Assembly (NCBI GenBank): GCA_002269645.1
Contig: NIVC01001225.1
Span: 36,943 to 100,942 of the forward strand
Length of the DNA: 64,000 bases
Source of the DNA: Macrostomum lignano
Taxonomy: Eukaryota
Direction of reading: 5' to 3'
Shown here: positions 54,501 through 57,500 of the stretch, piece after piece
How positions within the stretch are numbered: the stretch's first letter is position 1
Layout: every line of letters starts with the position of its first letter
The notes under the pieces: model-generated
The model's database searches: none
The model's input: only the letters and a program-made list of their open reading frames with translations
Told to the model about the DNA's origin: nothing
Position numbers and translations under genes: made by a program

Positions 54501-57500
54501 ATTCGGAATTTACTGCGGCCGCGACGTTAATCCCTGCGAGAACAACGCCAGATGCGAGGAGAGCCCCAGCGGCGCCATCTGCCACTGCGGCGGCACCGGC
54601 TACCAGGGCCCGACCTGCGGCGTGGACGTCGACGAGTGCTCAGGCGGCGGCGCGCCAGCTGGCGGAGGCGGCGCCCGGTCTCCCTGCGGCGGGCGAGGCG
54701 TGTGCGTGAACCAGCCGGGCAGCTACTACTGCAACTGCTCGCTTGGCTACAGCGGCCGCAGCTGCGAGACTTTCCACGTGCCTGGCGTTGACAGCGGCAG
54801 CTCCGCCCTGTTAGGCCTCAGCTTCCACGAAGTTGTCGCCATACTGAGCTCCATCTCAATTATATTGCTACTGGCTTTGACAATCTTCTTTGTGGTGTCC
54901 TACTGCAGCAGGCGGCGCGGCGGCGGCAGCGGCGGCGGAGTTCGTCGCCGACACGGCAAAGATCGACACGCCTCGTCGTCGGCTGCTGCCGCTGCAGCCG
55001 CAGCAGCCAAGAGCGGCAGCACCCTGGGCAGCGGCACCTACAGGCAGTGCTCCAGCCACGACCCGGCCGAGGCCATGGCCCTGGTGACGCTGGCCACTGG
55101 CGAGACCTGCATGGTGCCGCAGCGCCAGCTGGACCTGCGCCACTCCGTGCCCAACTGCTACAGCAGCGAGCACAACCTGCCCGAGGCGGCCGCCGTTGCC
55201 GCCTCCTACGCCGCCTACGATAAGCCGCATCCGCCGAGGCCGTTCAGCTTCTACTCGGACACGGCCGGGACGCCAACCCGCTGCCTGACGCCCAGCTGCA
55301 CCGCCACCATCAGCCGGCGCCCCAACCAGCAGCAGCAGCAGCAGCAGCAGCCGCATCACGGGCACCATCATCATCAGCAGCACCACCTGCAGCCGGCGTT
55401 TCTGCATAGCCGAGGCTCCCGGCTCTACGCCAGACAGGGCGCCGGATCCGCTCTGGGCGACATCATCGATGAGCAGGGTGAGCTCTCTGGGGAGGCCTGT
55501 CTGTTTCTTTTTCGCTTCACATATACTACTTGATATCTAATCTATCTAAGTAGTATGCAACCGATGACGCAGGCGGTATTTACATCTTAGCAGCTTGTTG
55601 CAGGCGTGCTAACTTTGTTTTTTCCCAACCTACTATAAGTAGTTCAAGCCTGTCAAGTTTTGATTTTAGACGTGTCCGTGCATTTTATTACTAGTATTTA
55701 CTATTATTAATACTATTAATATTAGTCACATTTGCATTTGCATTGCATTGCGCCGGCTGGCTAGCGTGTTCTATGCATATTTGATGCTTTTTAATTTTCT
55801 GTTTTGCTAAATAGAATTTTCATAAAAGGCTATCAATGCTACTACAAGTAGATTTAAGTATCAAGAAATTGAACACTTCGAAATTATGAAAATTACTACC
55901 TGTCCCTGCTTCTATTGGTGCTGCCGCTGCTGCTGTTCTTCGATTTTCCCTTAGCCAAGTTCCCAGCAACTCTCCGATATATAGCTAATTACCTTTGTTT
56001 TGTTGTTATTTAAAAAAGAAGGTACTCATCATCGCTCTCCAATTATTTGCAGAGGTTCACCACTTTGGTGGTGTTGGTGGCAGCGTGTCACCGGCTGGCT
56101 CGCACGCCTCCCGGCAAGGTTGGTACCCCCCCCCCCCCCCGAGTTGTAACCCTCCTAAGCCAGTCCTGCAACCCTATAATAATTTCCCATTCATTTGGCG
56201 TCTTTAAAATTTCATTTGTGCCGGCGAACTTTCCCGTTGAAAACGTTGCTGTGTAACCAGAATCGCTTTCATCGGGAAAGTCGCATGCGCGCACAACAAA
56301 CACTAAAAAGCCATAACGCCATTCATTTGTTCAGCTTCATTTTGCATCCACACACAGCGTTTGCATAATTTGCGATTGCAATGTAATGCGGTATAACAAT
56401 ATGTACTACTTAATCATTAATTTGTATTAACAAGCGTTGCCGCTAACTCACTAACTACTGTTACTACTATGAGTAGCATCCCAGTAATATAGGAGTAGTC
56501 CTAGGCAGTCTCTTGTCCCCTATTGGTGTGTTGGCTTTGCTCTATATAGTCGCGCTTGCACGTTGTGGCGGTTTCGGGTCTGGATTTTTGTATATAGCTT
56601 TATATTATATGGTACTTAGTAAACAAGCATTATAATTCATATATTCGGCAGTTCTGTGTATGCTTATATAAGTTTCTGTTTGCTTTGTTTCTGTTTTGTC
56701 GGCTTTTCCTCCTACTTTAGTTTCGGAAGAAAAAGACAATAGCTTTTTTGCTAGCTCATATTCAGTACTCGTATACTACTTATTAGTAGTTGCATTTTCA
56801 GCGTTTAACTCTTTAGTCAGATGCTGCTTTGTAATTTCATTTACACAGCCGCATCGTTTCTCGTCTGCGATACTTGGATTCCCCCAGCTTGGATTCCCCC
56901 AGCTTGGAATTCCCCCAGCTTGGGATTACCCCAGCTTGGAATTCCCCCAGCTTGGGATTACCCCAGCTTGGAATTCCCCCATATTGGGATTCCCCTACCT
57001 TAGGATTCCCACAGCTTGGGACTCCCCTAGATTTGGATTCTACCAGATTGGGATTCCCCTAGCTTGGAATTCCTCCAGATTGGGATTACCCCAGCTTGGA
57101 ATTCCCCCAGATTGGGATTCTCCTACCTTAGGATTCCCACAGCTTGGGACTCCCCTAGATTTGGATTCTCCCAGATTGGGATTCCCCTAGCTTGGGATTC
57201 CTCTAGATTGGGATTTCCCCAGCTTGGAATCCCCCCAGATTGGGATTCCTCTAGATTGGGATTGCCCCAGATTGGGCTTTCCCTAGATTGGAATCCCCCA
57301 CTTAAGATCCCTCAGCTTGGGATTCCCCTAATTTGGGATTCCCCAGCTTGAGATTCCAGCGCCTTGGGTTTGTTCTTATAGTGGGATTTACTTCTCCTAG
57401 CTTTCTTTCTGTAGGCTCGAGACTTTCTCTTCCCCTGCTGGAAGTAGTAAGCTTCGGTCAAGGATCGCCTGATTAATCTACTTGGTTTGACAGCCAGTGA

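Follow-up and report, generated by a model that had tools for sequence, protein, structure and literature searches.

The locus and its gene

We analyzed a window of 64,000 nucleotides (nt) from the flatworm Macrostomum lignano (assembly GCA_002269645.1, contig NIVC01001225.1, positions 36,943 to 100,942 of the forward strand), in which a 66-nt exon at 56053-56118 interrupts the coding sequence for the cytoplasmic tail of a predicted Fat-like cadherin, directly ahead of the conserved peptide GYHWDTSDW. By its sequence, the window is the 3' part of an M. lignano gene of the FAT1/FAT3/kugelei family, an assignment made because of the protein matches, the Cadherin domains, and the HWD motif encoded in the tail. 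The conceptual translation of the last exons (672 amino acids [aa]) had as its best match the M. lignano protein A0A1I8I0E3, at 93% identity, and an exhaustive representative search with A0A1I8I0E3 as the query gave as its top match PAA47892.1, which is also A0A267DH52 and carries the locus tag BOX15_Mlig029076g3 of the Mlig_3_7 assembly. The spliced translation of 54337-55477, 56053-56118, and 57666-58477 is the exact 672-residue C-terminal suffix of PAA47892.1.

Pfam Cadherin domains were found in plus-strand open reading frames (ORFs) lying between about 12 kb and 47 kb of the window, EGF/hEGF Pfam domains are precomputed for the model A0A1I8I0E3, and the exon upstream of the 66-nt exon encodes one hydrophobic stretch, the transmembrane helix. 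Cadherin repeats, EGF modules, and a single transmembrane helix give the protein a Fat-like architecture, the one that it shares with Drosophila Fat2/kugelei, Hydra HyFatl, and mammalian FAT1-3, all of them giant proteins with cadherin and EGF repeats, one transmembrane helix, and an HWD tail. The HWD motif is present in most Fat-like proteins (FAT1-3/kugelei) and absent from Fat/Fat4, Ds, and CELSR (PMC7430989). Here it stands at the very beginning of the last exon, in a GYHWDTSDW identical to that of human FAT1, whereas the rest of the flatworm tail is of low complexity (poly-Q/A/G/H) and is not alignable with the vertebrate tails. The exons of the region are rich in guanine plus cytosine (GC; ca. 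0.68) and the introns richer in AT, which is eukaryotic in character.

The features at the 3' end of the gene are as follows.

53995..55477, + strand: upstream coding exon, encoding the EGF repeats, the transmembrane helix, and the beginning of the cytoplasmic tail; its translation matches PAA47892.1 except for a 1-nt difference in a run of C
55478..56052, + strand: intron of 575 nt, GC 0.37; boundaries taken from the PAA47892.1 protein sequence
56053..56118, + strand: 66-nt exon, phase 1-1, 22 aa; acceptor ttatttgcag|, weak donor AAG|gttggt
56119..57665, + strand: intron of 1547 nt, GC 0.44; opens with a run of 15 C near the donor and holds an array of 16-nt tandem repeats
56876..57357, + strand: tandem repeat within that intron, unit GGATTCCCCCAGCTTG, 16 nt, repeated about 30 times, higher-order period 128
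57666..58477, + strand: last coding exon, (G)YHWDTSDW after aaaccgcag|, with the HWD/W-acidic motif; stop codon TGA at 58475-58477

The upstream exon ends in GAT GAG CAG G|gtgagc at 55477, that is, in ...GDIIDEQ plus one base (phase 1). The G carried over completes the first codon of the 66-nt exon, which has a good, pyrimidine-rich acceptor and itself terminates in CAA G|gttggt, again in phase 1. Inclusion thus adds 22 Gly/Ser-rich residues between DIIDEQ and GYHWDTSDW, while omission, joining 55477 to 57666, leaves the frame intact and restores the Gly codon as G|GC. A sequence-only reading of this DNA had proposed a 66-nt phase 1-1 exon candidate at this point, whose inclusion would add 22 aa and whose skipping would keep the frame; on direct reading all of its sequence statements were correct, both junctions being in phase 1.

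The 66-nt exon is part of the main mRNA

The 22 aa are present in all five public M. lignano models (PAA47892.1, PAA85367.1, A0A1I8FZX1, A0A1I8HT95, and A0A1I8I0E3), and four of the five run from them straight into GYHWDTSDW. PAA85367.1 stands for a paralogous copy of the gene (g1), and it and PAA47892.1 are GenBank models derived from RNA-seq. The Mlig_3_7 annotation is a genome-guided transcriptome, for which RNA-seq reads (SRP082513 and SRR2682326) were mapped with STAR and assembled with StringTie/TACO, de novo transcripts mapped with BLAT were added, and ORFs were called with TransDecoder (PMC5730564). Because the GenBank models were built from transcripts and not predicted ab initio, there is RNA support for the junctions 55477->56053 and 56118->57666. 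We conclude that 56053-56118 is a genuine, expressed coding exon of the main mRNA in whole-animal libraries.

The remaining model, A0A1I8I0E3, is poor. It joins 56118 to 58107, at an internal AG (58105-58106) of the last exon, with a change of frame, so that GYHWDTSDW is lost and followed by about 50 residues in a different frame. This join looks like a prediction forced by indel errors of an older assembly and not like an isoform.

The host intron corresponds to that of the vertebrate FAT1/FAT3 inserts

Vertebrate FAT1 has alternative cytoplasmic exons, designated +12, +32, and +8TR (Braun et al. 2007 J Biol Chem, as cited in PMC5082931), and Fat3 has the alternative exons 24.1/24.2 (+32) between its last two coding exons (Cheng et al. 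2016, PMC5082931; Aviles et al. 2022, PMC8865054). We recovered the vertebrate isoforms with a human FAT1 tail query, which matched Logan fragments at 100% identity. Fat3 without an insert reads ...CDDN|AYHWDTSDW, its +20 form carries the insert ASIVTVIRLVNDAVDTIESE, and its +32 form has the +20 insert followed by VSVMDQGQTYNR; the +32 form of FAT1 was also recovered in the tail search.

The intron junctions were read directly in two fish genomic loci. In Lates japonicus Fat3, GAT AAC G|gtaaga is followed by a 60-nt cassette, a 36-nt cassette, and cag|CG TAT CAC TGG; in Synaphobranchus kaupii FAT1, GAT AAC G|gtaagt is likewise followed by 60-nt and 36-nt cassettes and by cag|GT TAT CAT TGG. 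Each of the fish cassettes (60 nt, +20 aa; 36 nt, +12 aa) is in phase 1-1. The arrangement in M. lignano, GAG CAG G|gtgagc ... cag|GC TAT CAC TGG, has the same phase 1 in the codon directly before YHW. Two further lines of evidence give the same vertebrate boundary. In FAT1, the residue that follows DDN is Gly if there is no insert but Ala in the +32 form, and since such a Gly/Ala switch means that only the first base of the codon is shared, the vertebrate intron must be in phase 1. In addition, the published account of a Fat3 guide RNA places it "adjacent to the splice donor" (PMC8865054), and because a guide adjoining the donor needs an NGG protospacer-adjacent motif, the Fat3 splice site would be AAT G|G.

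Judged by its identical position and phase, the flatworm intron is the intron that houses the vertebrate FAT1/FAT3 inserts, and we regard it as homologous and ancient. The sequence-only reading had placed the exon at the same point as the FAT1 insert, and the phase-1 intron in the codon before YHWDTSDW, seen in both fish loci, bears this out. It had also stated, correctly, that FAT1 has alternative cytoplasmic inserts just before GYHWDTSDW, as the recovered isoforms and the literature agree (Fat3 is no different in this respect); the "+12" insert that it named corresponds to the 36-nt cassette. Its statement that the vertebrate inserts alter localization is supported by the published work on mouse Fat3 and FAT1 (PMC5082931, PMC8865054).

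The exons themselves are another matter. When the four vertebrate cassette peptides were aligned locally with the flatworm exon and with the three forward frames of the intron, none scored better than shuffled sequence, in keeping with the earlier suggestion of unrelated insert sequences. The vertebrate cassettes, ASIVTVI(R/H)LVN... and ...NSR/...YNR, thus have no similarity to the flatworm exon or intron, and on these alignments we take the 66-nt exon to be lineage specific and unrelated to them. In the window, nothing pointed to a repeat or a transposable element as its origin, and only the adjoining poly-C run had matches elsewhere.

The two systems are alike in three respects: the position and phase of the intron (phase 1, codon before YHWDTSDW), the presence in it of a short frame-keeping exon or exons (in mouse Fat3 only as the pair 24.1 + 24.2), and the fact that inclusion parts the conserved Tyr/HWD motif from an acidic, Ser-rich stretch of the upstream exon. 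They differ in that the flatworm has one exon of 66 nt, whereas vertebrates have two (60 + 36 nt in fish, 56 + 40 nt in mouse Fat3); in that no known model lacks the flatworm exon, whereas alternative use and developmental regulation have been demonstrated for the vertebrate exons; and in that the effect of the insert was established by experiment in vertebrates and is a prediction in the flatworm. In mouse Fat3 the two exons, of 56 and 40 nt, are reported to be an obligate pair (PMC5082931). In fish, each cassette preserves the frame on its own, and models with +20 only exist (P0105 and P0094), so the internal boundary between the cassettes seems to differ between lineages.

Beyond these loci, the 14 long matches read from the exhaustive search, which otherwise returned mostly EGF-repeat proteins, included none with a Fat-like tail, and a Logan contig with a Fat-like gene lacked an exon coding for YHWD in the roughly 2.5 kb that follow the ORF encoding the transmembrane segment.

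Constitutive or regulated inclusion

We lean towards the view that inclusion of the 66-nt exon is constitutive or predominant in whole worms. The available models are most simply read as constitutive inclusion: none of the five public M. lignano models represents a skipped isoform, and an exact look-up of the hypothetical skipped versions of PAA47892.1 and PAA85367.1 in a collection of 15 billion proteins found neither. These negatives are weak, however, because the TACO run behind the annotation used --isoform-frac 0.75, a setting that drops minor isoforms (PMC5730564).

Several observations weigh against constitutive inclusion, the first being that it is deduced from nothing but the absence of a skipped model, in an annotation whose pipeline filtered out minor isoforms. 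The exon is short and symmetric, as is typical of cassette exons. Among the seven donors read in the gene, its AAG|gttggt alone has a pyrimidine at +3, the other six being gtgagc, gtaaga, gtaaga, gtacgt, gtagct, and gtgagc. The GC content at its third codon positions (GC3) is 0.59, compared with 0.82-0.84 in the flanking exons. The last observation concerns the Kif5-ID of the vertebrate proteins, Q(S/T)xxSxQxxxxD(D/G)xxY, within which the FAT1/Fat3 inserts break the DNXYH motif (PMC5082931, PMC8865054). Only the skipped flatworm form puts Q(-15), S(-11), D(-4), and Y(0) in the register of this motif. Aligned with QSLSSFQSESCDDNGY, the skipped-form junction matches at Q-15, S-11, D-4, G-1, and Y0 and mismatches at S/T(-14), Q(-9), and D/G(-3, here E), so that, unlike the vertebrate proteins, the flatworm keeps only four of the seven specified positions of the consensus. 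Since the register arises only when the exon is left out, there is a hint that the skipped form may still matter.

These same observations speak for the chief alternative, namely, a regulated cassette that is left out by some cells or at some stages and toggles motor binding or localization as the inserts of FAT1/FAT3 do. With the exon skipped, D-E-Q-G-Y-H-W would again form an unbroken motif; such a switch would have arisen by convergence or would be an ancient one retained with a replaced exon. The position and phase of the intron match those of the vertebrate switch, a symmetric 66-nt exon keeps the frame in both forms, and GTTGGT is a weak donor in a gene whose other donors, as far as read, are all GT[A/G]. 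GC3 is lower than in the neighboring exons, the end of the upstream exon fits the Kif5-ID register only if it is joined directly to GYHW, and the annotation pipeline would hide a minor isoform. Set against this, the five public models all include the exon, the skipped protein versions were absent from the exact look-up, the Rbfox-type element GCAUG is not enriched in the flanking introns (two sites in 2.2 kb, about what chance gives for a 5-mer), and the paralogous copy is too similar to reveal selection. On this evidence, and by analogy with the vertebrate genes, regulated skipping may occur, but we hold it only tentatively. The more specific proposal, in which a convergent cassette sits in the same ancient intron, the insert form is the default, and bilaterian Fat-like cadherins reuse the site as a switch of kinesin binding or localization, would seem unlikely. 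The label "regulated splice switch" is unproven.

Two further explanations, which would alter the exon itself, are together very improbable. The exon might end farther downstream, at donors at 56142 or 56145, giving 90- or 93-nt versions that run through the poly-C run; both versions are stop free and frame preserving, and the GC-rich island reaches to about 56145, but 56118 is used in all models that reach the last exon and the alternative donors, GA|gttgta and TT|gtaacc, are no better, so we give this little credence. It is just as hard to believe that the exon is an artifact of annotation or prediction, with the 66 nt absent from the mature mRNA and brought into the models by misassembled transcripts or ab initio prediction. 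Within the 2188 nt of 55478-57665, 110 AG..GT candidates of 9-300 nt are free of stops and preserve the frame, and the 66 nt are open in each of the three forward frames, so the bare open-frame AG..GT pattern, common as it is in the intron, is not evidence of an exon, and one model, A0A1I8I0E3, is clearly poor. Against an artifact stand the concurrence of two independent annotations on both exon boundaries, the derivation of the GenBank models from mapped RNA-seq and de novo transcripts, the exact reading from the exon into the last exon in four models, and base composition: the exon has a GC content of 0.65, compared with 0.37 and 0.44 in the flanking introns, and is the unique GC island of the interval, all 66-nt windows with GC >= 0.65 lying at the exon and the maximum elsewhere being 0.59.

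The gene has a second microexon, of 39 nt and phase 0-0, at 49396-49434 (+), in the extracellular region. It reads ctaaactag|ATT GAT GAC ... TAT ATG|gtaaga, encodes 13 aa, and is present in the transcript-based models PAA47892.1 and PAA85367.1 and absent from the WormBase-type model P0269, in which 47105 is joined to 50696; it is possibly a true cassette. Vertebrate Fat3 likewise has an extracellular alternative exon (5.1).

The paralogous copy and repeats

The paralogous copy on NIVC01000331.1 differs from the window by no substitution in the 66-nt exon, by one in the 575-nt intron, by 13 in the 1547-nt intron, and by 10 in 815 nt of the last exon. Because the copies differ here by less than 1%, the paralogue provides no test of purifying selection on the exon. 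The 1547-nt intron, host of the tandem repeat, shows 74 indel columns in this comparison. The run of 15 C, at 56126-56140 (+), starts 8 nt past the exon donor, and between the two copies it differs by 2 nt. A shorter run in the upstream exon differs as well: at 54333-54336 (+) the window has CCCC and NIVC01000331.1 has CCCCC, and PAA47892.1 needs five bases. As written, the frame of the upstream exon shifts at ...CSNT|PGGYQ..., with both sides matching PAA47892.1 exactly; the 1-nt difference is either a homopolymer assembly error or the mark of a frameshifted gene copy.

Tandem arrays also occur in other introns and downstream of the gene (48000-48920, 50098-50460, and 60166-62000), where BLAST comparison with the paralogous locus shows them as offset ladders whose steps are about 23, 8, and 37 nt. 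The M. lignano genome is repeat rich (PMC5730564), which fits the arrays seen. At 3348-5822 (+) lies an 824-aa open frame without a Pfam match, in a region of extreme T over A (AT skew -0.74 at 4001-6000), which is probably not an exon but low-complexity or repeat sequence.

Proposed effect of the insert and its significance

The vertebrate inserts abolish Kif5B binding and relocalize the protein, and in the retina the switch is developmental (PMC5082931, PMC8865054). In the flatworm, the 22 Gly/Ser-rich residues, probably disordered, separate DIIDEQ, the acidic last residues of the upstream exon, from GYHWDTSDW. By analogy with Fat3(+32), the insert would part the conserved Tyr and the W-acidic HWDTSDW from the acidic, Ser-containing half of a Kif5-interaction-like motif, and the default flatworm protein would then resemble the insert-containing isoforms of vertebrates. 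An effect of the flatworm insert on motor binding or localization is predicted from this likeness.

The 66-nt exon as such is already contained in GenBank and UniProt models, and the homology of the intron is a modest evolutionary observation; we found no description of an exon of unrelated sequence lying in a homologue of the FAT1/FAT3 switch intron. Assuming common descent rather than parallel gain, the intron would be at least as old as the bilaterian ancestor. The site would also have gained coding exons more than once, and it is likely a hot spot where motif-splitting exons arise. In vertebrates, the binding of FAT1/Fat3 to kinesin-1 and their place in migrating cells and neurons depend on alternative exons at this junction. 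If the flatworm exon is constitutive, it is an ordinary lineage-specific exon, one that the GenBank models already include; if it is alternative, a homologous site would have acquired a splice switch by convergence, in a worm open to transgenesis.

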